Positions 893 through 27,700 of a DNA stretch of 64,000 nt are shown in pieces. Under the pieces are notes generated by a model. It was given only the letters and a program-made list of their open reading frames with translations. It ran no database searches and was not told where the DNA came from. The number at the start of each line of letters is the position of its first letter. Position 1 is the stretch's first letter. The stretch is from Leucoraja erinacea (Eukaryota), in NCBI RefSeq assembly GCF_028641065.1, contig NC_073393.1, positions 20,088,001-20,152,000 of the forward strand, read 5' to 3'. Position numbers and translations under genes: made by a program.

Positions 893-3800
893 ATATAACC
901 ATATAACCATATAACAATTACAGCACGGAAACAGGCCATCCTGGCCCTAAAAGTCCGTGCCGAACAACTTTTTTCCCCCTTAGTCCCACCTGCCTGCACT
1001 CATACCATAACCCTCCATTCCTTTCTCATCCATATGCCTATCTAATTTATTTTTAAATGATACCAATGAACCTGCCTCCACCACTTCCACTGGAAGCTCA
1101 TTCCACACCGCTACCACTCTCTGAGTAAAGAAGTTCCCCCTCATATTACCCCTAAACTTCTGTCCCTTAATTCTAAAGTCATGTCCTCTTGTTTGAATCT
1201 TCCCTATTCTCAAAGGGAAAAGCTTGTCCACATCAACTCTGTCTATCCCTCTCATCATTTTAAAGACTTCTATCAAGTCCCCCCTTTACCTTCTGCGCTC
1301 CAGAGAATAAAGACCTAACTTATTCAACCTATCTCTGTAACTTAGTTGTTGAAACCCAGGCAACATTCTAGTAAATCTCCTCTGTACTCTCTCTATTTTG
1401 TTGACATCCTTCCTATAATTGGGCGACCAAAATTGTACACCATACTCCAGATTTGGTCTCACCAATGCCTTGTACAATTTTAACATTACATCCCAGCTTC
1501 TATACTCAATGCTCTGATTTATAAAGGCTAGCATACCAAAAGCTTTCTTTACCACCCTATCTATATGAGATTCCACCTTCAAGGAACTATGCACGGTTAT
1601 TCCCAGATCCCTCTGTTCAACTGTATTCTTCAATTCCCTACCATTTACCATGTACGTCCTATTTTGATTTGTCCTGCCAAGGTGTATCACCTCACATTTA
1701 TCAGCATTAAACTACATCTGCCATCTTTCAGCCCATTTTTCCAAATGGCCTAAATCACTCTGTAGACTTTGGAAATCCTCTTCATTATCCACAACACCCC
1801 CTATCTTGGTATCATCTGCATACTTACTAATCCAATTTACCACACCTTCATCCAGATCATTGATGTACATGACAAACAACAAAGGACCCAACACAGATCC
1901 CTGAGGCACCCCACTAGTCACCTGCCTCCAACCCGATAAACAGCCATCCACCATTGCCCTCTGGCTTCTCCCATTCAGCCACTGTTGAATCCATCTTGCT
2001 ATTCCTGCATTTATACCCAACAGTTGAACCTTCTTAACCAACCTTCCATGAGGAACCTTGTCAAAGGCCTTACTAAAGTCCATATAGACAACATCCACTG
2101 CTTTACCCTCATCAATTTCCCTAGTAACCTCTTCAAAAAATTCAAGAAGATTAGTCAAACATGACCTTCCAAGCACAAATCCATGTTGACTGTTCCTAAT
2201 CAGACCCTGTTTATCTAGATGCTTATATATATTATCTCTAAGTATCTTTTCCATTAATTTGCCCACCACTGAAGTCAAACAAACAGGTCTATAATTGCTA
2301 GGTTTACTCTTAGAACCCTTTTAAAACAATGGAACAACATGCGCAGTACGCCAATCCTCGGGGACTATTCCCGTTTCTAATGACATTTGAAATATTTCTG
2401 TCATAGCCCCGTCTATTTCTACACTAACTTCCCTCAATGTCCTAGGGAATATCCTGTCAGGACCTGGAGACTTATCCACTTTTATATTTTTCAAAAGTGT
2501 CAGTACTTCTTTTACTTTGAACCTCATAGTATCCATAGCTACTTTACTAGTTTCCATTACCTCACATAATTCAATATCATTCTCCTTGGTGAATACCGAA
2601 GAAAATAAATTGTTCAATATCTCCCCCATTTCTTTTGGCTCTGCAGATAACTGTCCACTCTGTCTCTCCAATGGACCAATTTTATCCCTCGTTATCGTTT
2701 TGCTATTAATATAGCTGTAGAAACCCTTTGGATTTACTTTCACCTTACTTGCCAAAGCAACCTCATATCTTCTTTTAGCTTTTCTAATTTATTTCTTAAG
2801 ATTCTTTTTACATTCCTTATACTCCTCAAGCACCTCATTTACTTCATGCTGCCTATAATTATTGTAGATCTCCCTCTTTTTCCGAACAAGATGTCCAATT
2901 TCCCTTGAAAACCATGGCTCTTTCCAATTTTTACTGTTTCCTTTCAACCGAACAGGAACATAAAGATTCTGTACTCTTAAAATTTCCCTTTTAAATGTCC
3001 TCCATTTCTCTTCTACATCTTTCCCATAAAACAAAATGTCCCAGTTCACTCCTTTTAAATTATCTCGCATCTCATCAAAGTTAGCCTTTCTCCAATCAAA
3101 AATCTCAACCCTAGGTCCAGTTCTGACCCTCTCCATAATTATATTGAAACTAATGGTATTGTGATCACTGGACCCGAAGTTCTCCCCAACGCATACCTCC
3201 GCCACCTGTCCCATCTCATTTCCTAACAGGAGGTCCAGCACTGCCCCTCCTCTAGTATGTACCTCTATGTATTGCTGCGAAAAAACTATCCTGCACACAT
3301 TTTACAAACTCCAACCCATCCAGCCCATTTACAGAATGTGTTTCCCAGTCTATGTGTGGAAAGTTGAAATCTCCCACAATCACTACCTTGTGCTTACTAC
3401 TAATATCTGCTATCTCCTTACATATTTGCTCTTCCAATTCTCGTTCCCTGTTTGGCGGTCTATAATACACCCCTATAAGTGTTGCTACACCTTTCCCACT
3501 TCTCAATTCCACCCAAATAGCCTTCCTAGATGAGCCCTCCAATCTATCCTGCCAAAGCACTGCTGTAATATCTTCCCTGACTAGCAATACAACACCTCCA
3601 CCTCTTGCCCCTCCAATTCTATCACATCTGAAGCAACGAAATCCTGGAATATTTAGTTTCCAATCACAGCCCTCCTGCAACCACGTTTCACTGATCGCCA
3701 CAACATCATACTTCCAGGTGTCTATCCAGACTCTAAGCTCATCCACTTTTCTTACAATGCTCCTAGCATTAAAATATGCACATTTAAGAAACCCCCCGTC

Positions 3801-4035
3801 TCTTATTCTCTGTTTATTTCCTTTTTTTTCTTTCTCCTCTTGTGTCCGAGTGCTTCCCTTTTCTGCTTCCTGCCTCCCATTCTGTCTACTAGCTTTCGCT
3901 ATTTGAGTCCCTCGCCCCAACCAATTTAGTTTAAAGTCTCCCCAGCAGCCTTTGCAAATTTCCCCGCTAGGATATTGGTCCCCCTCGGGTTCAAGTGCAA
4001 TCCATCCTTTCTGTACAGGTCCCACCTTCCCCAAA
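893..4035 (-). mobile_element. CR1-clade LINE, 5'-truncated, near-complete ORF2 (APE endonuclease + RT) broken by a few frameshifts/stops
   Basis: ORF track: endonuclease motifs (YFNARS, AISETWL, YYRPP, GDFN) at 3252-4076; RT motifs ([25 protein letters not shown]) at 1712-2278; CR1 C-terminal FFTQRVV..WN; short tandem tail (ccatataa)n at about 893-915. Confidence 0.95.
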
Positions 4036-4659
4036 TATACTATACTTCTGTTAGATCTTCCCTCAACCTTTGACATTCCAGAGAAAACAAGCCAAGTTTG
4101 TCCAATCTCTCCTTATATCTAATTCCCTCTAATCCGGCAACATTCAGATAAATTAGACAAAGTGCTGGAGTAACTCAGCTGGTCAGTCAGCTTCTTTTCT
4201 TTAGACTGAGTTCTGACCCGAAATGTCACCCATCCTTTCTCTCCAGAGATGTTGCCTGGCCCGCTAAATTACTCCAGCACGTTTTGTCTGTTTTAGGTTT
4301 AAATCAGCATGTGCAGTTTCTTTCCAAGCTTTAAGACAGACCTCTTCTGCACGCGTCCACATCCTTCCGGTAATGGGGTGACCATAGCTGCACACATTAT
4401 ATCAAAACTCCATTCGTCTCTGAGAATCTATTCTTTATTTGTGCACCATGCCTTTGTGAGACCTTTTCTATTAGTAATGACATACTTTCGGTTTGTGCTG
4501 ACCAGTTAAGAGGCAGTAGTAACTCCTCATCCGATAGGTCTATTTAAACAATAGACAATAGACAATAGGTGCAGGAGTAGGCCATTCGGCCCTTCGAGTT
4601 AACACCGCCATTCAGTGTGATCATGGCTGATCATGTTGATCATTTTAATTTGGAAGTAA

Positions 4660-4925: not shown

Positions 4926-6141
4926 CCCTATTAATGTCAACCTCATGGATCAGTAGAACACTGAGTGAAATACGAACAGATCCATTTAACGTGACGGAAA
5001 ACCACAAATCACAGTCATACAGCAAGAAATCAAACCCTTCGTCCAAACTAATACATGCGCACCAAGATGTCCCATCTACCTGTCCGCGTTTGTCCTTTAT
5101 CCCTCCAAACCATGCACATGTAAGCGTGTATTTTAAATGCTCATAGTATCTGCCTCTTACCGCTCAGATCACCGTACACAATCCTTCCTCGGACATTAAG
5201 CCATGTTATTAAACCCCAACGTTTCAACAGAAGAAAAATCTTCGATAATTAACTTATCGATGTCTATCATGACCTTACATGCTTCTATCGTGTCAACTAT
5301 CTGGGAAAGCACGCCAATACAATTGCCCCTTCAACCTCAACGGGCGGCATAGTGCCGGAACGGGAATAGTTGGTGTCTCACAGCGCCGGAGACCCCAGTT
5401 CGACCACCTCCCATATCCCAAAGTCTCGGGGGTCTGCACATTTATTGGCCTCTGTAAAAAAAAAAGCCTCGTATGTAGAGAGTGTTTGCGTTTTGGGATT
5501 GCACAGAACGAGTGTGGGCTGCTGAACGATGGTGGGATTGGACTCGGCGTGCCGAATGAGCCTGTTTCCACCTCCATCTGTAAAACTAAAACTAGATCTG
5601 TGTGCAGACGTTATTCCAGTGGCCTTTCCAGGATCAATCAATTTCAGTCTTCAGTGGTTACTCCCATAACACCAGGACTGTGAATGTTAACAGGAGAATG
5701 CATACTATTCGGTGCCAAATGAAAATCCACGGAGTGGGAACGAACATTTGCCTCAAACAGCTGATCTTTGAAGAATATTTATTGTCTGCTGAGAGGAAGT
5801 AGCATGGGAGCCGAGGGAGCAAAACATTATTCCTCAGCAGTGCTCTATCGAGAGTCTTTGCCGCCGAAACAGCTGCCGGGGCTCCTTGCATTAGCGATTC
5901 CAAGGCAGAGGAGTCGATAACTGAACTCCTTCCACTCTGAATCAATAATGTGCAGAGATATAAGAAAGCAGAAAATAATGATCAAGAGCGAGTAAGTTTA
6001 GAAATTTCGCCTCGATGAATGGGCGAGAGGAAGTTTCAAATGCCCTCTCGAACTATGAACTGGATCCTTCAAAATGAAGAGCAAGAGAAAAATACTGAAG
6101 GACGAAAGTAGTTTAGGCCAACTTAATCCAGACGAAATGTG

Positions 6142-6352
6142 TAAGGAGGAACTACAGATCCTGGATTAAACCGAAGTTACACACACAATGCTGGAGTAAC
6201 GAAGCGGGACAGGCAGCATGTTTGGAGAAAAGGAATGGGTGGCGTTTCGGGTCTAGTCTGAAGAAGAGACTCGACCCAAAATGTCACCCATTCCTTCTCT
6301 CCAGAAATGCTACCTGTCCCCCTGAGTTACTCCAGCATTTTATGGCTATCTT
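6142..6352. repeat. Penelope-related short repeat, two copies in inverted orientation
   Basis: TGCTGGAGTAAC..GTTTCGGGTC is mirrored by GACCCAAAATGTCACCC..GTTACTCCAGCA; the same unit flanks the GIY-YIG fragment at 27513-27640. Confidence 0.75.
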
Positions 6353-6364
6353 CACCTAGAAGAA

Positions 6365-6456
6365 GGTTCACAAAAAAGCTGGAGAAACTCAGCGGGTGCA
6401 GCAGCATCTGAGCGAAGGAAAAAGGCAACGTTTCGGGCCGAAACCCTTCTTCAGAC
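6365..6456 (-). mobile_element. 92-bp Penelope-related insertion with minimal hammerhead motif and 15-bp flanking direct repeat
   Basis: CTTCACCTAGAAGAA at 6350-6364 and 6457-6471; minus strand CTGAAGA-AGGGTTTCGGCCC-GAAAC-GTT. Confidence 0.75.
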
Positions 6457-6854
6457 CTTCACCTAGAAGAATATAGTTTCTTATTTTCCCCTCTTCGCTT
6501 GTGTCGTCTACCACAAGACCAGTCCTCCGTCACCTTTGCTACGCCTCCCCTTATATACCTTCAGCTTAATACGTTCAGAGAGTGTCCTGTTGGCGAGTCA
6601 TCGACAAGCATCACACCCTTCGCGCCCAATCAGGAGGTTGGTTTATATTCAACTGACATTTCCTGCTAAAATAGGTCACTTGGGCACAAATCCATTTTCC
6701 TCTGCAACTCACTTCCTTCGGTGGTTTAACTGCAGCAAGTTGGACGCTCAACATGAGAGCACGTCGTATCACGAACAAGACCTGACCTTTAGGGAACTGC
6801 TATCTCCAACGAAACAACGCCACAGTTTCTGGATAGACCTGATTCTGTTCTACA

Positions 6855-6900
6855 ATGTTAATCTATTTGTACCTTTGCGCGCTGTGGATTTTTTATGAAG
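6855..6900 (+). CDS. Ig receptor exon 1: signal peptide [15 protein letters not shown]
   Basis: Hydrophobic 46-nt leader exon, donor AAG|GTATT, 121-bp phase-1 intron as in Ig/TCR V genes. Confidence 0.8.
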
Positions 6901-9900
6901 GTATTCTTCCTAATACTTCAGCGTCGGGTTGGCCCGTTGATCATCCATGTAACTACATACGATTAAACTATTTATTGTATCTACATTATATTTCATCGCA
7001 ACATTTGTTTCTGTTTGACAGTGGCTCCAGCGACAATATCCCAGATCCCTAAAGCTAGCACGGTGATGGTGGGAACAGATATCACATTCGAATGCGTTAC
7101 CAGCGAGGTGCCGAACAAAGCAAGTCTGATTGTAAATTGGTGGAAACTTGGTGATGAAGGGCTATTACAACCAAGTTCCCATGGCAGAAAACAGGTTATT
7201 CCGTTGGAAAACGTAAGGAGTTTGCTCAAAATCTTTGATGTCCGTGTCGCCGACTCTGGGATATACTACTGTAATGTAGTTCAGCAAACAGATGAGATTG
7301 TGAAAGGAACCGGATCCAGGCTTGAGGTGCACGGTGAGAGGACTGCAGTGCGGTACATAAGTCAAACGAGCAGAATTAGTTCATTCCGCCCATCGACTCC
7401 GTTTCGGGGTTCCTGTTGAGCAAGGGCTACTCCGTAAAATGTCAATGGGCCAGGTCAACCTATCTTTAAATAATGTCAACAGTTCATCTCTATGTACTTC
7501 TTACAACATTTGAATAAGGAAAATGTTGCTATTTCTACCACTATGTTTGTAACGTCGGTCTGCCGTTGGTTGCTTAGATCATTCAGTTAGTGAACGGTAG
7601 ACGATAAGAACGCCTTTATATATATATATATTGTTGGTATATATATAATTGTACGATTCACGTAGCACAAGAGGAATCTGAAGGCCAACGGGCGGTGTTC
7701 GGTAGCAAAATGCCTTGTGATAATCTAGCACATAAAGTATCCCAGAAATCTATGGGAATATTGCTTGTATACCTCAAGGTAACTTACTGAGAATTGTTTA
7801 ATGTTACATCGAATAACTAGAGTGCGTAGAGTAAGGCTAACTACCAGCGAACAGAAAAGCGGAATGAGTTGCTGGTGAAGTGCTATTCTCTGTGTAGACT
7901 TAATCAGGCTAACAACCCGGTCGAATTGGTTTGATTTGAACAATGTAACATTAAAATCATCCAAATTATAGGCGAATTGTAGCTTGTTGGTTAAAAAAAA
8001 ATTCTTGATTACAAATAACCGGGGAGCCCGTCAGTATTCACCTGTCCAGTCTAATTTGAAGGACTAGATTCTAAACTGGACTGAAATGGTAATTCAGATA
8101 ATCATTTTTCTTCTTTCTCGCGTCCCACAGCTTCTCCAGAACCTGTCAGCCTTTCCACCAAAGCGCCGGAAACAAACTCGTCCAATCTCGTCCTCGTGTG
8201 CAAGACAGGAGAGTTTTACCCGGAGTCTCTCACCTTCATTTGGTATAAAAACGACACCAACATTGAGACTGGTATCAGCACTAGTAAAATCCTGAACTCA
8301 AACGGAACTTATGCAGCGTCCAGCAGCTTGCAAACATTGCAGCCGTCCGGCAGTAGCGCTTTGTACACCTGTCTGGTAACCCACCGCACACTTCAGAGTC
8401 CAGCTATGGCTATTTACGTTGATGCCAGTTTTAATCCGGGTAAGATGCTGGCGATGTTTCATGTGCTGACAATAGAGGACGCAATAAACAGCTTCACATT
8501 ATTTTCATTCCTATTGCTATGGGCATGTGAATTTTGTAGAATATCCACCAAAGATAGTCGTTCTGCGCCTGTTTCCAAAAATAAGATAAATGCCAATAAA
8601 ATCAATGACAAATGTGAATTACGTAAAAATGTCATCATAGAAACATAGAAACATAGAAAACAGGTGCAGGAGGAGGCCATTCGGCCCTTCGAGCCAGCAC
8701 CGCCATTCAATGTGATCATGACTGATCGCCCCCTATCAAAAACCCGTGTCTGCCTTCTCCCCATATCCCTTCACTCCACTAGCCCCTAGAGCTCTATCTA
8801 ACTCTCTCTTAAATCCATCCAGTAATTTGGCCTCCATTGCCCCCTGTGGAAGGGAATTCCATAAATTCACAACTCCCTGAGTGAAAAAGTTTTTTCTCAC
8901 CTCAGTCTTAAATGACCTCCCCTTTATTCTAACACTGTGGCCCCTGGTTCTGGACTCGCCCAACATTGGGAACATTTTTTCCTGCATCTAGCTTGTCCAG
9001 TCCTTTTATAATTTTATATGTTTCTATAAAATTTATTATATGTTTCTATAAAATCATCAATTCTATGATGCCGCACAGTGTGTTGCTGGTAGAGCTTCCG
9101 CCTCCCAGTTACAATCTGAAGACCCGAAGTGTCACCCATTCCTTCTCTCCAGAGATGTTGCCTGCCCCGCTGAGTTACTCCAGCATTTTCGTGCCTACCT
9201 GCCAGCTACAGTAGCCCGGGTTGAGTCAGTCTACATGACCAAATTAACCCACTTAGTGGAATTTGCGTTTTCCCTATAAATGCACGAGTTTGTTCCTAGA
9301 ACTCCCGTGGCCTCCGTGTCCCAAAGATGTGCCCGTTGGACGATTAATTTCTCTGTACATGTCTCCTGGTCTATAGGTTTGTATTGTAACCGGAAACAGG
9401 GGGAGTTAACGACAACATGGAGAGAGTAAACTGGGTTTGGTGGGAATGGGTGCATGGTGATGGATCCGGAAAAGATGAGCCGCAGGGTCTATTTCTAAAC
9501 TAGTTCACTCTATTAACTTGTTGGCCTGAAAAAGAGAGAGGCAAATACATATAAATCAATTTCTTCCCTCAATGAACTGTCTTCCGTGTTAAAACACTGC
9601 GGATTTGGGTCAGATCTTAAATCCGTTGTTACTTAGTGCGAGATATGGTCAGAAATTGGTATATATATTTTGTAAATCAAAAACGTCATTACCGTTGACT
9701 CAAATAAATTATAAAGATAATTGCTTGTTCGCATACTGAGCTCGAGTTGTATAGTGGTTCCAGCGAAATAAATATGAATAAAGTGAAACAATATTCATAA
9801 ATGTAATATTTTAAATGGCGAAGGATAACAGTTTGCGTCCGTGATTTTGTTGTGCATAGTCGGAAAGTGCACATCACACCACAAAAAAACGAGCTTATAA

Positions 9901-12900
9901 AATTTGTTGCATAAGCTGCGTACAACATCAATGATAATTATTCCAAAGATGATTAATGCTGATGATTATTCTCGTAGCCAAAGAAAAACCACAGCTGTTC
10001 CTCGTGATTTTTGGATGCACATTGAGCGTATTGGTTTGCCTTACCGTCATAGTTCTCAGTCGGAGAAAATGCCAATTCCGTAAACAGGAAGGTAAGGAAG
10101 ATTCAGTGTAATTTCCTTCGGGTTCGTTTAAAGAATAGAGGGAAACAGCGGGCGGCACGGTGGCACAGCTTTAGAGTTGCTGCTGTACAGTGCCAGAGAC
10201 CCGGGTGCGATCTTGACTATGGGTTGTGTCTGTACGGAGTTTGTACATTCTCCTAGTGACTTGCGTGCATTTACTCCGGGAGCTCCGGTTTCCCCCACAC
10301 TCCAAAGACGTACAGGTTTGTAGTCTAATCGCCTTAGTATAATTGTAAATTGTCCCTGGAGTGTGTAGGATAGTGTTAGTTTGCGGGTTTGCACTGTATT
10401 ACTAGTGTATCTGTTTCTGCACTGTATTACTAGTGTAAACTAAACTAAGTTGGGGAAAAACGAAGGCCAACGTTACATCTGTCATAATTACTCAATTAAT
10501 CGATTAGTGGATACCCACGTAGAGAGTGTTTAATATTGTTTTATTTATTACAATTGTTAAACTAAGTCAGGTTAAATTCAAATCTTACAGATGTCATGTT
10601 TCTTTTATTTTAAACCCACGACTCCCAAGGGGTTACGGCAGTAGATATTTCGCAGTATATGTTCACAATCGTATTATGGTGATAATGTAGTTTGAGAACG
10701 CTCTTCAAATACCTTCCCTCCGTGGATTTTACGTCATAACTGCTTCCGAGGACAGTTCGCTGCAACTTTTGTACTCTTCCTACTGAACTCTTGCAAATTG
10801 GATTGGAAGATTGGATTGGATACATATAAATGACCTGGATATAAATGCAGATTGGTTGTTGAGTAGGTTTATTGACGACGCCAACATTGAAGGAAATGCT
10901 GACAGTGAGGAAAGCAGTCAGATGATATAGCGGGATATGGACCAGTTGCATAAACCGGCGAAGAAATGACAGATGGGGATTAACCAGTGCAAAAATTAAA
11001 ATGTACTTCGGGGGTTGAATGTAAGGGGAAAGTATACAGTTTATGGCAAGACACTTAACATTGATGTGCAGGGGTATCTTAGAGTCCATCTTCATTGCTC
11101 ACTGGACGCAGCAACACAGGTAGATGGGGTGGTAAAGAAGGCGAATAGTATGCTTACCTTCAGTATTAGCGGCGCTTAATACAAGTCAATACGTCATTAT
11201 GCAGCTACATAGAAACATAGAAACATAGAAATTAGGTGCAGGAGTATGCCATTCGGCCCTTCGAGCCTGCACCGCCATTCAATATGATCATGGCTGATCA
11301 TCCAACTCAGTATCCCGTACCTGCCTTCTCTCCATACCCCCTGATCCCCTTAGCCACAAGGGCCACATCTAACTCCCTCTTAAATATAGCCAATGAACTG
11401 GCCTCAACTACCCTCTGTGGCAGAGAGTTCCAGAGATTCACCACACTCTGTGTGAATCTCGGGAAAAAAGTTCTTCTCATCTCAGTTTTAAAGGATTTCC
11501 CCCTTATCCTTAAGCTGTGGCCCCTTGTCCTGGACTTCCCTAACATCGGGAACAATCTTCCTGCATCTAGCCTGTCCAACCCCTTAAGAATTTTGTAAGT
11601 TTCTATAAGATCCCCTCTCAATCTCCTAAATTCTAGAGAGTATAAACCAAGTCTATCCGGTCTTTCTTCATAAGACAGTCCTGACTTTGGTCATGCCGTA
11701 TTTTAGTATCGCATGGAGATGGGAAATGTTCTTAGTTACGAGTTCAAATATGGGCCCGTGTTTCGATTTCTACTACAATTGCATGTCTTCTTCTAAACTT
11801 CAGTTAGCACTCAACTGCTTAAAAAGCTACATTATTTCTGGGGGGTGGGCGTTTAATGGGGATGTGCGGGCAACGTTTTTACGCAGAGAGTAGTGGGGGC
11901 CTGGAACACATTGGCAAATGTCCTGGCAACATCTTCGTAAATATCTCTGCACCCTTTCCAACTGCAATAATCCTTTTAAAACTAATAAAATACCATATGA
12001 AGGAAATGCATGCCCATTCGAAAAGATGGACTGCTTCAAAAATCTACACAATTCTTTAGAAAGTCATCAGGTGCTTACGAACAAGACCTGATTCTGCAAT
12101 TCTGTTCGCCCAATACTTGTCACAGTTATTCCAAATCTAATGTCAACAAGCTAACGCCCAATTGTTGCAACATTAACCTGATCACGTTTTTACGCCTTCG
12201 AATACAACAGGAGAAGCATTTCCCTACCAACATTCATCAATATAATCTTTCGTAACGATTTTAGTATTCATTTGAGCGATTGAAATATGTGAAACAAACA
12301 CGGAGCCAAATGCGGTTTTCTCCTGAACCGCGAATGGAATATTCCTTCTTCCTACTGTTTTGCGAACCATTTGGGCGACTCTACGCGGTTGTGAGCTAAC
12401 TACAAAATCCGTTGATTTTATAGATCATTAAGGAGGAGGTTGAATATACGCCAGTACACCATCGTAAATGGCGCAAAAGATAAGAACGAAAGTGGTGTGA
12501 ATAACCTCTAGATATCCACTTGAAACAATGACCAATGATGCAGCAGGACAAATAAATAATTGGATGAGCTGGAGACTACATTAACCTGAACCACACGAAC
12601 TGCCATCTGTTAATAAAAATGTCAATGTGGCAATTCTGACAACTTCAAATTAAAGCGGATCATTATTTCTTGCTCATTGCACACGCGCGTGTGTGTGTGG
12701 CTCTGTGTGTGTGTGCTCGCTTGTGTGTGCGTGTGTATTAGAGTGTGTGTACGTGTGTGTGTGTGTTTGTGTGTGTTTGTGCGTGTGTGTGCGTGCGTGT
12801 GTATGTGCGTGCGTGTGTACGCGTGCGCGTGTGTATACGTGCGTGTGTAAACGTATATNNNNNNNNNNNNNNNNNNNNNNNNNNNNNNNNNNNNNNNNNN

Positions 12901-13556
12901 NNNNNNNNNNNNNNNNNNNNNNNNNNNNNNNNNNNNNNNNNNNNNNNNNNNNNNNNNNNNNNNNNNNNNNNNNNNNNNNNNNNNNNNNNNNNNNNGTCTG
13001 TTTAGGTGGTTTGGGTTTTTCATGAGCATGGGTTTGTAAGAAGGTTTATGCCCGGTTTTCTCTCTGGGTGTGAGCGTGCTGAGCCTGCGCTTTTGCGCGT
13101 ATTTGTTCAGTACTGCAAGTCTGGTCTGAAAGCTTGCAGCTAAATGTTATTTGACAAATCATTAATTAATTAACATAATCTAGTTTAAAGGTCATCAACT
13201 TAATTAATGTTGTGGAATTATAAAACATTTCGGAACATGACGGTATACACTAACTATTTTAAATACCAATTATTTGTTTTGATTCCGAACACATCGGAGG
13301 CAACGGACAAGATGGCAATACAGTGATAAATTAACAAGCAATGTTGAAGCTTTGCCTAAACATGATATTTCCGGAGTCTTCTTGTAAACATGACGCAGAG
13401 CCGTTGAAAATCATGAATAAAACGTTTAGCAGAATATTTCTGTAACTAAGAAGGCGGGAAAGTCATGTATAGCTGAATTGTCATGAGAATAAGAGTTCCG
13501 ATATTGATTTGTTTTACCTGTTAGAGTACGCCACTGTGCAGATATGCCGAATCTGA
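6855..13556 (+). CDS. Non-rearranging VJ-C1 Ig-superfamily type I membrane receptor (SIRP-like / antigen-receptor-like), about 270 aa, gene span
   Basis: Exons 6855-6900, 7022-7333, 8131-8439, 9978-10091, 13525-13556; all introns GT-AG and phase 1; open frame of 813 nt. Last exon tentative. Confidence 0.8.
7022..7333 (+). CDS. Ig receptor exon 2: V-set domain with joined J-like G strand
   Basis: ..[29 protein letters not shown]; acceptor tttgacag, donor CACG|gtgag. Confidence 0.92.
8131..8439 (+). CDS. Ig receptor exon 3: C1-set domain
   Basis: [36 protein letters not shown]; acceptor cccacag, donor CCGG|gtaag. Confidence 0.92.
8636..9030 (-). mobile_element. CR1 LINE 3' fragment
   Basis: [20 protein letters not shown]; (catagaaa)n tail. 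Confidence 0.85.
9978..10091 (+). CDS. Ig receptor exon 4: transmembrane
   Basis: [38 protein letters not shown]; acceptor ctcgtag, donor GAAG|gtaag; not in the ORF track. Confidence 0.85.
10150..10448 (+). mobile_element. V-SINE (HE1-like) copy
   Basis: GGCACGGTGGCACAG..CCGGGTGCGATC head, GTACGGAGTTTGTACATTCTCC core, (taaac)n tail. Confidence 0.8.
11208..11685 (-). mobile_element. Young CR1 3' fragment nested in an older + strand CR1 remnant (about 10790-11910)
   Basis: ORF 11307-11621 [17 protein letters not shown]..; (catagaaa)n tail. Confidence 0.85.
12424..12483 (+). CDS. Candidate cytoplasmic exon with ITIM consensus ([19 protein letters not shown])
   Basis: Acceptor ttttatag; VEYTPV fits VxYxxV; phase 0, so it needs an unidentified linking exon. 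Confidence 0.35.
   Translation: MIKEEVEYTPVHHRKWRKR
12684..12856. repeat. (TG)n/(TGCG)n microsatellite next to assembly gap 12859-12995
   Basis: Direct reading. Confidence 0.95.
13525..13556 (+). CDS. Candidate terminal cytoplasmic exon ([10 protein letters not shown])
   Basis: Acceptor ttttacctgttag, phase 1 in frame with the TM exon; AATAAA at 13711. Confidence 0.55.
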
Positions 13557-13799
13557 CTGCTGTTGGGACTTGCACAAGAAAGGAGTGCACAAACATTTTT
13601 ACCGTTAAATATTTTAGAAAGTGTGTTTCTGGCTGATGTTGAAATAAGAAATATTAGCTGGAGCAGAAATATGGGAATATTCGGTCCATCTGTGAAGGAA
13701 TATAGTTCGAAATAAAGATTTGTTGGGCAGATGAAACTTGACTGAGAGAATACTTTTGTCGTGAAACACTGATGTAAAACATTAAATGCCATGTATCGA

Positions 13800-14080
13800 A
13801 AATGAGGAAAACGGCCGAGATGAGGAAAACATTTTTCACACAGAGAGTGGCGAATCTCTGGAATTATCAGCCACAGAAGGTAGTTGAGGCCAGTTCATTG
13901 GCTATATTTAAGAGGGAGCTAGATGTGGCCCTTGTGGCTAAAGGGGTCAGGGGGTATAGAGAGAAGGCAGGTACAGGATACTGAGTTGGATGATCAGCCA
14001 TGATCATATTGAATGGCGGTGCAGGCTCGAAGGGCCGAATGGCCTACTCCTGCACCTATTTTCTATGTTTCTATGTTTCT
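13800..14080 (+). mobile_element. CR1 LINE 3' fragment
   Basis: FFTQRVANLWN; (tttctatg)n tail. Confidence 0.85.
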
Positions 14081-17000
14081 CCCCGAAATGTTGTTTGTAC
14101 TGGACGTCTCGCCCATTCCTCTCTCAGATTTCAGTTACTCCCTGGAACACAGACGGCATCCTAAGACACTGACAACTTCCTGACGCACATCATCTCCTTC
14201 CATCTGAAACTCATTCAATTTAACTCGTCTGCTAAAGAGAATGCATAAGTCCTCTTGTCCGGTCATTTTACATTTAGGTTTGGGTTTATTATTGTCACAG
14301 GTACAATGAAAAACATGGTCTTGCATGCTATCCAAGCCTATCAGATATATCATACATACATAATCAGTTCAAACTCAAGTACAATAGATACACCAAAGGG
14401 GAAATAGACATAGTGTTCTCATTTCTAACCATTGCAGCGCATATACTCCTTAGACAAAGTCCAATGTCCACAATGGGGTGTGTGGCGGCAGTGGTGAATC
14501 GTAGTGGTGTTGATGTGTGAATCGAATGTAACTTATGGAAGGAGCGTTCAGATGCTCACATTTCTCCTGAGTCAGGTGGTTTCCGCTGTGAAACTTTTTG
14601 TACCTTCTGCTGATAGTACCTTCTGTCAATGGTATCGTCTGCAAACGTGAAGACGTAATTTGAGCCGAATTTAGCTATACAATCGTGTGTAAAGAAAGTA
14701 TAGTAGGGGACTGAGAATGCAATATTTCGAGCCACCAGTGTTGATTGTTATTGTGGAGGAGATGCTGTCACTCATTTCTGTCTGTGGGTCAGTACATTGA
14801 GGATCCAATGATAGAGGCGGAAGCTGATTCCTCGCTCCATCCGATGCCTCCAATTAAAAAAAATCTCCTACCCGTGTATGCATGTTCCACAGGCCTGCTT
14901 AGTTTCTATTCGGTGTCACCTCCTCTAGTATCTTTGCTTGTGTCCCTCTCCCCTCGCCCGCCCACCTTCGACTCTAGGGGGTGCCACCCGCAGCCGACCT
15001 CGAGAGACCTGTTTTGATGCTGTAATTCTGAACTACATCGCCTCTGCCGTGACATTTGAGGGGCAGTAGCTATTTATGGTAATGATTCCAGGGATGAGGG
15101 ACTTTAGTTCTGTGGATAGATTGTAGAAGCTAAAAGAAGTTTCCCATAGAACTGAAAAGATACCTTGGGGATTTGATCGTGGGATGTTAAATCACGAGCA
15201 CATTAGAGTGAAAGTGGAGTGAGGAAAACAGTTTCTAGAAAATGATAACTATGGGGCATAGAATGAAGGTGATGGGCAGAACCAAAACAAAACAAATCAA
15301 AAATGGTAGTTAGACAAAAATGCTGGAGAAACTCAGCGGGTGGAGGCAGGTTCCATGGACTACCCGCTGTTTTCCTGGTGTCACCCTGAAGATTAAATTA
15401 ACATCAACATTAGATATACATAACTTCTTAAATCTTACCTTCTTGTTTACGGAATTTCCAATGAACGAAATGGCTGGAGATGGGAAAAAGCAACTTGCTT
15501 GAAACTGCATGGCTCGAAAGAACTGGAGCGAGTACTTTGAACATGGCGCCAAAACATGGCGCCTCTTGCAATCGATCTCAGTATATTTCTGTACAATTGC
15601 TAATCGGGGATCCGGGGTATTGCAATGCTCCAGTGGAGTCTTTATAATTTCTCCCTGTTGGCACTTCGCTCATGTGTCAGTAAAATCTCCATTGAATCAT
15701 TCACTCTTGAACCATTTGGCCGAACCAGACCACGCCGACCTTCGGCCAACCACTTTCTAAATACCTACGCAAGGGGAACTCTACAGAGGCCAACTAATAT
15801 ACAAATCGGCACGTATTTGGGATGTGGGAGGGAAAAAAACTGGAGCACGTGGAGAAAACGCGCAATCTCCGCACACGGCATACCAGGTCAGGATTGAACC
15901 CTGGCCTCTGGCGATGTGAGGCCATGTTTTATTAGTACATAGGTAGTCCATATGTACTGAAACAGAACAATGAAATTCTTACGTGCGGCAGCATAAAAGG
16001 TTTGTAAACACAGTACTGAATGGATAATATAATAAACAAATAGAAGGATTGAACTGGGTCTCTGGCATTGTGGAGCAATCGCTCTACAACTGCACATGGA
16101 GTTCAGGCGAGAAAATCAAGAAATCAAAAAATTCACAGAAAAATTGGATATTCCGTCCTCCTTGTCAGGAGTACCAACCTTTCTGACAAACAATTGGAGA
16201 AATGTTGGCAGTTACTTGTGGAAATACGGTTCCGTGCATCGATTTGTACTTTAATCTCAATTTTACTTTTACATTTCCGTTAGCACTCAGCTGCTTTAAA
16301 AACTAATTATTTCTAGGGGATATTTTAGTGGAGACGTGCGGGGCACGTTTTTACACAGCGTGGCGGGGGCCTGGAATGCACCTGCCATGGGTGGTGGTGG
16401 AGGAAGATGCCATCATGGCGTTCAAGATGCTTCTGGATAGGCAATAGAGCGATATTGATTATCTCAGTTTAAATTGACATATTATTAGGCACAAACATAG
16501 TGGGCCGAGAGGGGCATTTCGTGTGCTATGCTGTTCTATGCCCAATGTTTTTTCTTGACCAAAAATTTGTTGAGAATGTTTTAATTGTGATGGGCAGTTT
16601 TGTTAGCTTGTGTAGGAAGTTGCTGACTGCTTGATGGATTTTTGTTAGCTTGATGGCATCACACCAGCTCAATATCATAGATTCCTGTCAATTCACGCTG
16701 AAAGGCATCGAAAATTAGAAGTTCTCGCTTCACAAGACCACCTGATCCTTATGAGAGCTTACTTGGGCGAGAAATCTAATCATAAAACTTATCAACTTTA
16801 TTCGATGTCATTTCTGTTTTTTTAAAGAAGATCTTGTGACGGGATGTGAAAGGAATAATAATGCTGTTACTTTTTCATGCTGTGAAACAACATGGACTTC
16901 AGAGGAAATGTATTTAACATGGCGGCGAGCACATAATACGTGGCATATCATCGCCACCTACTGGTCATATAGTGTTCGATAGTTGACCGCACAGTAATCA

Positions 17001-24700: not shown

Positions 24701-27700
24701 TCTACAAGAAGCAATGCCTCAAGAAGGCAGCATAATCAAAAACCACCCCATCTTGACCATGCACTCTTCTCACTGCTGACGTGGAAAGAAGTTCCAGGTG
24801 CCTGAAAATTGGTACCTCCAAGTTCAAAAAGTGTTTTTTCCCTATTAATCATCAGGTTCTTGAAACACCTTGCACAACCCTAACTACAACCCTAACTCAA
24901 CACCAATTCATGAGGGGCTTTGTACTATGGTTGCTCTATGCCATATGTGTTTTTGCACTGTCATGGCCTGTTTTACTTAGAAAAACTAATAATTTATTTA
25001 TTTATTTGTTATTGTTGTTATGTCCTATCCATGGTTGTTGGATTCAGAACTGGCTTACTGATAGAAGATACTGGGTTGAGGTGTAAAGATATATTGTTCT
25101 GGCTGTAGGTCCCTGACCAGTAGAGTTCCGCAGGGATGTGTGTCGGGACATCTGTTGTTTGTAATGTGAACAATTTTGATGTACATGCAAATGGGTTGGT
25201 TAGTAAGTATGCTACAAAGCATACTATCCCTAATCAGCCCTTGCCAATCCAAATGGCTGTATAACCTATCCCTCAGAATACTCTCCAGTAACTTTCCAAC
25301 TACAGATGTTAAGCTCACCACCCTATAGTTCCCAGCATTTTCCCTGCAGCCTTTCTTGAAAAGAGGCACAACATTTGCCACCCCCTCCAGTCTTCCAGCA
25401 CCTCTCCTGAATTTAAGGACTACTCGTAAATTTCAACCAGGGCACCTGCAATTTCCTCTCTGGTTTCACACAATATCCTAGGATATATCTGATCAGTCAA
25501 TGGACAGGGGTCTTGATTCTTGATTAGTAAGCTTCAAGTACACAGCTCAAGTACACAGCTCAACATCTCCATACAGCTCAATGTGCTGCAGCGCAAATCT
25601 GATGTTTGGTTACTGCTCATCTCATTAATCGGCATGTGGATAAATTTATGGTGGGTTTGTTTTGCAAGCTAACTGGGCAACAGGCAGCATATTTTCCATG
25701 GAGCTCACCTGGTGAGGCGGCCTTTCGTCTTACTGGCGTCAACTCCATTGCCCGTCACAGCTGCCAGCTTTCGACTTCGATAGTTTTCGTAGTGGATATT
25801 GTTGGTAATCTCCTTCAGATCCTGCATATGTGTCCTGCAATAAAAGCATGACTAGGACGCGAGTTGAAGCTTCCTTGCAGATCACAAGTATAACTCAACA
25901 CTAAGCTTGTGTCAAACCCAGGAGGCACAGTTTATTCCCCAATAGCTAAAACCACCCACCAACACACAGAATAATGCCACAGAGAAATGGGCCCTGTCAG
26001 CCCACCTTGTCTATGTCTACCATGATGCCTCCTATGCCACTTACCTGGATTAGGCCTGTTTCTCTCAATTCCTTTCCTATCTAACTATCTGTTTAAACAT
26101 CTTTAAACGTGGTAACTGCCTCCAGCTCCTTTGGCAGCTCGTTCCAGTTATTCATCACCCTATGTGGAAAAAAAGACAGACCTCCAAATTTCTCCACTCT
26201 CACCCCAAATTTACTTCTAGGCTCTCCTACCTAGTAAAAAGACAATCTACACTACTTATGCCCCTCATAATCTCATAAATCTCTTAAGGCCACCCCTCAG
26301 CCTATCTCTCTTGTACAGGTCACCTCTGACACAGTAGAGATCTCAATGATCGAAAAACCTGAACTCCTGCTCCCAGCACCAGGTTCTCAACAAACATTCA
26401 GCCGTCTTATCTTCCTATTCGTACCCTCACTAACCATATACAATATCCCAAGATTGTGATGTAGCTCATTCCCAGGTCAACTACACCATTTGTGGATGGC
26501 AAAAACATTTTCCCTGATTGCCAACAACCCTGGAATATAGCTCAGAAACTGAGATTCTTTTGTCTTATATAAAAAGACTAATTGCCTCCAAGGATGGCGT
26601 TTATCAGCACTCTCAAATGAACATTGGATTTTCACTAAAGAGAAAATGAAATACAGTGAAAGAATAATGTGTCATTAATTACAGTTACGGAGCACGTCAC
26701 ACTGTGCTGCAATAACACAATGATTCAATGATTCATTCTCATTGTCTGATGAACTTTACCTGATCAGCATGTTGCGCAAAATGGAGAAATCACAATGGTC
26801 TCCATTTTCAACTGTAAAAGATTGAGAAAAAAGTAAATCAATTTTCATCCTCATCATACAGACATAGGTACTCATCCTACTCTAACAAGGCTGACCCGCT
26901 TATTAGCATCAATATTTCCCTTTTTGTTATGTAATAAACAATAGTCTGTATTTGTGCTTTTGGCACTGATAAACAGGATGCAGTGCTACGGGATTNNNNN
27001 NNNNNNNNNNNNNNNNNNNNNNNNNNNNNNNNNNNNNNNNNNNNNNNNNNNNNNNNNNNNNNNNNNNNNNNNNNNNNNNNNNNNNNNNNNNNNNNNNNNN
27101 NNNNNNNNNNNNNNNNNNNNNNNNNNNNNNNNNNNNNNNNNNNNNNNNNNNNNNNNNNNNNNNNNNNNNNNNNNNNNNNNNNNNNNNNNNNNNNNNNNNN
27201 NNNNNNNNNNNNNNNNNNNNNGATCTAACACTGATAAAGCCAATTATTTGCTGATTTGTGTAAAAGCTGTAGAATGTTAAATCTATGAACATGGCAAACA
27301 TCTGTGGGGAGAAGTTCCAGGATCCAAACACAGTGTTCAACACCTTCCAAGCTTTGTTTGTCCAATTTATTTCTTAATAATATTCCAAAACAAATCAAGC
27401 CGCCTCAACTGTAAAATTATCAAGTTAATTGCAAAATGCTTTCCATCAATTTGTTGCTGTTTCACTGATCAACTGAGATTAAACTGAATGGTCAAACTAG
27501 ATTGAAGGGTTCAAGAAGGAACTGCAGATGCTGGAAAATCAAAGGTACACAAAAATGCTGGAGAAACTCAGCGGGTGCAGCAGCATCTATGGAGCGAAGG
27601 AAATAGATGACGTTTCGGGCCGAAACCCTTCTTCAGACTGATAGGGGGTGGGGGGGGGGGAGAAGGAAGGAAAAAGGGGAGGAGGTGGAGCCCGAGGGCG

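Follow-up and report, generated by a model that had tools for sequence, protein, structure and literature searches.

A non-rearranging V-C1 transmembrane gene of the little skate and its SIRP-like relatives in cartilaginous fishes

Introduction

What kind of receptor is encoded by a gene in which a variable (V) immunoglobulin (Ig) domain, already joined to a J-like strand, is followed by one C1-set constant domain and a transmembrane (TM) helix? Such a gene lies on the + strand of a 64,000-nucleotide stretch of the genome of the little skate, Leucoraja erinacea (contig NC_073393.1; the whole 64 kb stretch is called the window below), where the first-pass annotation had described, at 6855-13556, a receptor that resembles a proto-antigen receptor and probably inhibits. 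The SIRPs are textbook VJ-C1 relatives of antigen receptors and are already recognised as such, and the skate gene itself is already predicted in RefSeq (XP_055504728.1). The question is which of the known V-C systems the gene resembles, and what its product could do. Our answer is that it is probably a SIRP-gamma-like, non-signalling member of a paired-receptor family (rough probability 0.6).

Gene structure and transcript

The locus turned out to be an intact, spliced gene of five exons (leader, VJ-type V, C1, TM and a terminal exon that reaches its stop at once), and all of its introns are GT-AG and in phase 1. Exon 1 (6729-6900) holds the 5' untranslated region (UTR) and the leader, which starts with the ATG at 6855 and comprises 15 codons and one base, the first, of a split codon; its translation is the N-terminus of the RefSeq protein (P0162 in our set). 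Intron 1 (6901-7021) has 121 nucleotides (nt) and is followed by the V exon (7022-7333; Pfam V-set, 3.7e-9), which ends in YYC, ten residues and KGTGSRLEV, a germline-joined J-like G strand of the GxG type. Since this exon carries its own G strand and is spliced straight to C1, the gene needs no rearrangement, and a scan of 6700-8500 on both strands for recombination signal sequences (RSS; heptamer-spacer-nonamer) gave no candidate. The C1-set exon (8131-8439), which contains YTCLVTH and also encodes a short stalk, is matched by Pfam to C1-set with 1.9e-13, compared with 7.6e-4 for the CD80-like C2-set_2. The translated TM exon (9978-10091) supplies the end of the stalk, the transmembrane helix (226-260 in an AlphaFold2 (AF2) model) and the juxtamembrane RRKCQF. 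No charged residue interrupts the hydrophobic stretch, so that the basic residue by which receptors of the SIRP-beta or KIR-S type couple to an adaptor is absent, and no cysteine for an interchain bond was seen in the stalk sequence. The terminal exon (12424-12603) is read in phase 1 as GAT CAT TAA: it completes an aspartate, adds a histidine and stops (TAA at 12429-12431), and the rest of it is 3' UTR with AATAAA at 12551.

The splicing is supported by public sequencing runs, four of which provided contigs that were aligned to 6700-12650 (5,951 letters). Three of the runs are genomic, with contigs that pass through the introns. Run X4 gave a spliced contig of 1087 nt, composed of 6729-6898, 7020-7332, 8130-8438 and 12422-12603; the offsets of one or two bases from the exon borders are alignment ambiguity at the AG and at the split-codon G. 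No piece is listed for contig letters 183-295 (113 nt), which were assigned to the TM exon because a contig of the same depth (24.9) differs at 10018 and 10025, at 42 and 49 letters from a piece end, and this places a piece start at 9977. The contig ends about 50 nt 3' of the AATAAA.

The predicted product is a type I membrane glycoprotein of 262 residues with three N-glycosylation sequons, and it is identical, letter for letter, to XP_055504728.1, including the end ...RKQEDH. The automatic RefSeq name of this protein, "H-2 class II beta chain-like", is wrong. An independently recorded product of 232 residues (P0194), called on a Logan contig of 1024 nt, has the same C-terminus ...QEDH. Most of what the first-pass annotation had read from the locus is thus borne out: the leader exon (6855-6900) with its 121-bp phase-1 intron, the single V exon with a J-like strand, the C1-set exon, the uncharged TM, the lack of an RSS, and the type I V-C1-TM protein without rearrangement, whose leader, V, C1 and TM are joined to the 12424 exon by the X4 contig. 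As for the extent of the gene, the exons were placed correctly except at the 3' limit, which had been set at 13556, while the transcript ends at about 12603.

The V exon also shows differences from the assembly. All four runs (two organisms) encode D and L, through differences at 7214-7215 and 7234, where the assembly has V64 and F71. The Logan product P0194 and the Amblyraja radiata orthologue P0193 carry D and L at these sites as well, which indicates that the reference individual carries derived V-domain alleles. A further difference, at 7161, is silent.

Cytoplasmic tail and 3' end

The cytoplasmic tail has about 13 residues and no tyrosine, and consequently no match to [SIVL]xYxx[IVL], the pattern of an ITIM (immunoreceptor tyrosine-based inhibitory motif). 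The inhibitory role proposed earlier is not supported: the protein ends in ...RKQEDH, followed by a stop, in the X4 contig as in the Logan transcript and the RefSeq model, and the full-length orthologues of other sharks and rays have no ITIM either. The in-frame TGA four codons past the skate stop aligns with the Heterodontus stop (EHGSGS-stop) and the Pristis stop (DHERKS-stop), so the frame used in the terminal exon is the ancestral one. A VEYTPV at 12439 was considered as an ITIM relic and rejected: it stands in another frame, behind both in-frame stops, and is part of the 3' UTR. To find a fossil inhibitory tail 3' of the TM exon, tblastn was run with 14 family proteins, and a hidden Markov model (HMM) of the paralogue tails was compared with all stop-free fragments of the window; nothing rose above noise in either search.

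The last exon of the first-pass annotation (13525-13556, + strand) is compatible with phase 1 and holds the sole match to EY[AT].[VIL][QK] in the six frames of the window. It is absent from the X4 contig, the Logan transcript and the RefSeq model, and is perhaps an alternative or a fossil terminal exon. The Amblyraja radiata orthologue (P0193, XP_032892404.1) ends in ...QEVIPNLM, not in ...QEDH, and its IPNL resembles an MPNL at 13545-13556, in a frame that differs from the one read by the first-pass annotation. Skates may therefore use two alternative terminal exons, one of them in the 13525-13556 region. Neither frame of that exon gives a canonical ITIM.

Relatives in cartilaginous fishes

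To place the gene, its model was searched exon by exon, and P0162, which a search with one of the relatives had returned, was used as the full-length protein. With the V exon as query, an exhaustive HMMER search listed 248 proteins at E <= 0.001, only one of which, the gene's own product, fell below 1e-30; single-domain matches of 220-450 residues were followed up. Over three search routes, it turned out that all relatives with the V-C1 layout come from sharks, rays or Callorhinchus. Their automatic names are diverse (SIRP-alpha-like, Ig-lambda-like, NCR3LG1-like, tapasin-related-like, CD276-like and butyrophilin-like). In an alignment of 33 family members there are 15 invariant positions, among them the cysteines of both pairs, the two core tryptophans and the GxG (G111 and G113), and the skate protein keeps all 15 as well as 15 nearly invariant residues. 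The family members of one species lie on one chromosome-sized contig. That the gene belongs to a poorly described chondrichthyan family, as had been supposed, agrees with these results and with the literature, where we found no paper on this cartilaginous-fish V-C1 family, the coverage of subscription journals being limited.

The cytoplasmic tails of the family fall into four classes. Some are long and carry several tyrosine motifs, while others are short and motif-free; in a conserved subgroup the membrane segment is of the WWIYLCG type and the tail is basic and rich in cysteine; and some members have an arginine in the membrane segment. Judged from these sequences, the large V-C1-TM family of sharks, rays and chimaeras is a paired-receptor family.

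A maximum-likelihood tree was computed for 51 family members, leaving out P0025, P0086, P0151, P0152, P0180 and P0192 as fusions, duplicates or fragments. The skate and Pristis proteins are grouped with 100/100 support, within an orthogroup (100/99) of seven rows, namely skate, Pristis, Heptranchias, Mustelus, Scyliorhinus and two from Heterodontus. RefSeq records of orthologues include XP_051884567.1 (Pristis), XP_067906082.1 (Heterodontus) and XP_038662043.1 (Scyliorhinus). Four of the six other members could be parsed, and all four have an uncharged TM and a tail that gives no ITIM match; in the remaining two (P0157 and P0159) no TM was recognised by the tail parser. Isoform tails from Scyliorhinus and Heterodontus are motif-free as well. 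Identity to the skate protein within the orthogroup is 46-64% for V, compared with 56-71% for C1, and the tail is barely conserved past a juxtamembrane basic-Cys-Gln stretch. As this orthogroup is nested among paralogues that bear ITIMs, arranged in a SIRP-alpha-like double tyrosine motif, its short tail is derived; as the short tail is common to sharks and rays, it is also old.

Two further groups of proteins were seen in these searches. A second conserved orthogroup of sharks and rays (P0079, P0108, P0166, P0167, P0174 and P0176-P0179; 100/100 in the tree) has the WWIYLCG membrane segment and a very basic, cysteine-rich tail (CVRCSEP ... KKHRKR) without tyrosine motifs. Besides, proteins of turtle, viper and frog (P0004, P0015, P0018, P0042, P0049 and P0067) contain 3-6 tandem VJ-type V domains and ITIM tails; proteins of this type are among the best matches of the skate V exon and may be tetrapod relatives of its V domain.

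Comparison with SIRPs

The agreement with SIRPs lies mainly in the tails of the inhibitory paralogues. These read TYAxL[D/E]L, then about 15 residues often with GKPK, and then N-TEYAx[LIV]Q. Human SIRP-alpha reads ITYADLNL, 16 residues (PKGKKPAPQAAEPNNH) and TEYASIQT, and it ends in FSEYASVQVPRK; the double tyrosine motif of the paralogues has nearly the same wording and spacing as the BTAM of SIRP-alpha. Among 247,000 residues of fetched proteins, the paired tyrosine motif has a sole match outside the V-C1 family, in one turtle receptor. When the family profile was compared with solved structures over V and C1, SIRP-alpha reached 117.7 bits in total (profile 23-215, chain 2-205) and SIRP-gamma 104.6 bits in total.

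The general layout is also shared. Like a SIRP, the skate protein begins with a V domain that is non-rearranging and includes a J-like G strand; a C1-set domain and one TM come next. The protein's family includes inhibitory long-tailed forms, forms with a basic membrane residue and tail-less forms, as the SIRPs do. SIRP-gamma has a tail of 4 residues, does not bind DAP12, and acts in adhesion or as a decoy (PMC12975943). The skate protein resembles it in its very short tail and its lack of a membrane charge, although its tail of about 13 residues is longer.

Several points weigh against a SIRP-gamma-like identity. SIRPs are V-C1-C1 proteins (PMC12975943), with two C1 domains, whereas a single C1 stands between V and TM in the spliced contig and in the RefSeq protein, and the window showed no additional Ig-like exon. 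The family profile matches the V-C region of Ig lambda with 78.8 bits in one stretch, its best match in the PDB, and UrIg2 with 55 bits, which is about as well as it matches SIRP. For this reason the SIRP link rests mainly on the paralogue tails, and those could be convergent; on sequence comparison, the ectodomain alone does not decide the matter. The sequence searches brought up no SIRP of a bony vertebrate. Superposition of the AF2 two-domain model on B7-H6, PD-L2 and butyrophilin gives a root-mean-square deviation of 2.7-4.5 over 185-199 residues, compared with about 11 for SIRP-gamma and the T-cell receptor (TCR), the predicted interdomain angle being unreliable. In addition, an alternative terminal exon may exist at 13525-13556. 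We call the family SIRP-like and leave its membership open; the paralogue tails tip the balance towards SIRP.

Comparison with antigen receptors and other V-C proteins

Other V-C proteins were compared in the same way. The best single-domain PDB match of the C1 exon is the human Ig lambda constant domain (33.8 bits), and UrIg2 comes second in the PDB for the C1 exon as well as for the family profile. For the V exon, the matches to antigen-receptor V domains of known structure are weak (E about 1e-4 for a shark VNAR and about 5e-4 for TCR alpha). Ig light chains are the best Foldseek matches of the AF2 model, whose mean predicted local distance difference test score (pLDDT) is 85. In VIA-align all V-C families fall within about 2 Z units, and neither Foldseek nor VIA-align discriminates among them. 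The neighbours in the protein Atlas are mixed V-C1 proteins, with an NCR3LG1 cluster among the nearest.

With Ig light chains and TCR, the skate gene shares a V(J)-C1 two-domain chain. It differs in having no RSS, no separate J segment, no interchain cysteine and no charged TM of the TCR type, and its V domain is remotely similar to that of antigen receptors. With UrIg and UrIg2 it has in common that all are non-rearranging VJ-C1 genes of cartilaginous fishes, and VJ-C1 genes have been discussed as remnants of antigen-receptor precursors (PMC10751288). UrIg2, however, has the domains V-C1-C2-C3 and dimerises through disulfide bonds, with an Fc-like part (PMC12227049, PMC10751288), whereas the skate gene has a single C domain, none of the further C domains of UrIg, a TM and relatives with ITIM tails. 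As in B7-H6, other B7 proteins and butyrophilins, the ectodomain consists of V and C, there is a single TM, and the exons have a phase-1 layout; these are also the proteins on which the AF2 shape superposes best. What separates the skate gene from B7 and butyrophilins is the invariant GxG J-like strand, the clear C1-set call and the paralogues with receptor-type tails. PRARPs are reportedly non-rearranging VJ-type genes of the Ig superfamily with a C domain, a TM and an ITIM, and are said to have been described in chicken and other bony vertebrates. The set of joined-VJ genes includes CD79, NITR, SIRP, CD8, NKp30 and PRARP, and several members of the CD28 family also have the GxG (PMC11599192).

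Proposed function and rival explanations

If the skate protein is a SIRP-gamma-like member of its family, it would be displayed on leukocytes and would bind a ligand through its V domain. It would not signal by itself, since about 13 cytoplasmic residues without a tyrosine, and a membrane segment without a charge for an adaptor of the DAP12 or FcR-gamma type, leave no evident means of doing so. It could then act as SIRP-gamma does, either in adhesion or by signalling one way, to the cell that bears the ligand; alternatively, it could compete for a shared ligand and so tune those paralogues that inhibit or activate. The conserved cysteine next to the membrane may carry a palmitoyl group.

Other explanations were weighed against this reading. 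A ligand of the B7 or butyrophilin type, for instance one like B7-H6, would offer its V domain to a receptor that another cell carries, and it would not require a signalling tail. Such a role is unlikely, though some observations would suit it: NCBI names several family members NCR3LG1-like, CD276-like or butyrophilin-like, the AF2 model reaches Z 15.3 on B7-H6 (193 residues), 14.8 on PD-L2 and 13.8-14.3 on butyrophilin, the NCR3LG1 cluster is near in the Atlas, and short motif-free tails are common in ligands. Those Z scores are, however, tied within about 2 for all V-C families, and Pfam favours C1-set over the CD80-like C2-set by ten orders of magnitude. The invariant GxG bulge is a feature of the joined-VJ set, although several CD28-family members keep a GxG (PMC11599192), and the gene is nested among paralogues with SIRP-alpha-like inhibitory tails and with membrane arginines, a signature of receptors. 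An inhibitory receptor would still be obtained if the TM exon were spliced to the exon at 13525-13556 and the tyrosine there recruited SHP phosphatases. Ahead of that exon stand a polypyrimidine tract and, in the correct phase, an AG; the exon's EYA.VQ, found once in the six frames of the 64 kb window, is the motif of the distal tyrosine in the family and in SIRP-alpha; and in Amblyraja the RefSeq orthologue seems to have its terminal exon in this region. We nevertheless regard this splicing as quite improbable. In the skate contig, as in the Logan transcript and the RefSeq model, the 12424 exon is used and the stop comes after DH; a direct join would give Q-E-E-Y-A-T-V, with E at -2, where ITIMs need I, V, L or S; the Amblyraja ending VIPNLM fits the region in a different frame only, and without a tyrosine; and no orthologue examined has an ITIM, nor did the profile of paralogue tails find anything significant downstream.

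A link to antigen receptors can be imagined in more than one form. The protein could be one chain of a non-rearranging heterodimer, similar to TCR, Ig or PRARP, that signals through its partner. The V-C1-TM architecture with a J-like strand would suit this, as would the Ig light chains found by Foldseek and the Ig lambda that is the best single-stretch PDB match of the profile; the stalk without an interchain cysteine, the uncharged TM, the lack of a partner gene in the window, and the look of the family members, which is that of classic single-chain paired receptors, make it quite unlikely. That the locus is a germline-joined Ig light-chain or TCR gene, as known in cartilaginous fishes, is effectively refuted. 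Several relatives are named "immunoglobulin lambda-1 light chain-like" in RefSeq and the human lambda constant region is the best match of the C1 exon, yet the gene has a TM exon and a cytoplasmic tail and no RSS, its V exon is matched to VNAR and TCR alpha only at the weak E values given above, and its nearest relatives are receptors that bear ITIMs or arginines, not Ig. Decay of a gene copy that is transcribed and non-functional is also very improbable. The skate branch is 3 times as long as that of Pristis (0.42 vs 0.14), and the skate stop precedes by four codons the TGA aligned with the Heterodontus and Pristis stops. Against this stand an intact frame, canonical splice sites, a spliced mRNA, the retention of all conserved family residues, orthologues in at least seven other elasmobranch species, and an Amblyraja protein of at least 90% identity (same 90% cluster).

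The term proto-antigen receptor is overstated: the gene belongs, as one of many, to a family of paired receptors. It is no better supported for the skate gene than for SIRPs in general, and the finding by itself has no bearing on the origins of antigen receptors. A more far-reaching version would make the single-C1 V-C1-TM family the ancestral form of the SIRP lineage, branching near the stem of the rearranging antigen-receptor chains, with the tail-less orthogroup as its most conserved member, perhaps kept through chain pairing or a conserved self ligand. We consider this very doubtful; if it were true, the family would be a living model of a V-C1 receptor chain from before RAG.

Other features of the window

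Only one V exon and one C1 exon were found in the window, and no second Ig gene or partner chain was found within its 64 kb. None of ten other long open reading frames tested there proved to be another conserved protein-coding gene, and no evidence was found that this piece of the genome is linked to the major histocompatibility complex (MHC) or to an antigen-receptor complex. An Rfam scan of 5500-14500 gave nothing that reached the gathering score.

Repeats occupy several places in and around the gene. A high-copy element lies in intron 3 (8636-9200, + strand), with a summed contig depth in the millions and a direct repeat shared with 11208-11299; a second copy, recognised by contig depth and repeat comparison, lies in intron 4 (11208-11680, + strand), and a third, inverted copy is downstream of the gene at 13835-14080 (inverted match 13992-14080). 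All three copies begin with CATAGAAA repeats. An inverted repeat of 87 nt within 6173-6353, with arms 82% complementary and 7 nt apart, is found about 400 nt upstream of the transcript. Further upstream, on the - strand, 1286-4076 holds remains of a long interspersed nuclear element (LINE), with reading frames for a reverse transcriptase (RVT_1, 4e-25) and an endonuclease (Exo_endo_phos, 9e-13). There are two assembly gaps. One, at 12859-12995, falls within a microsatellite rich in GT, about 256 nt beyond the end of the supported transcript; it interrupts no reading frame of the supported model and would be intronic if the 13525 exon were used. The other (26996-27221) is outside the V-C1-TM gene.

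Implications

In conclusion, the names given automatically to these proteins in RefSeq, such as MHC class II beta-like, Ig lambda, B7-H6 ligand, tapasin-related and SIRP-alpha-like, are misleading, for their bearers are members of one family. If the SIRP-like tails of that family reflect kinship, a paired-receptor system of the SIRP type would reach back to the base of the jawed vertebrates. The tail-less form to which the skate gene belongs is an orthogroup common to sharks and rays and not a recent accident, which argues for a conserved role that needs no signalling of its own.

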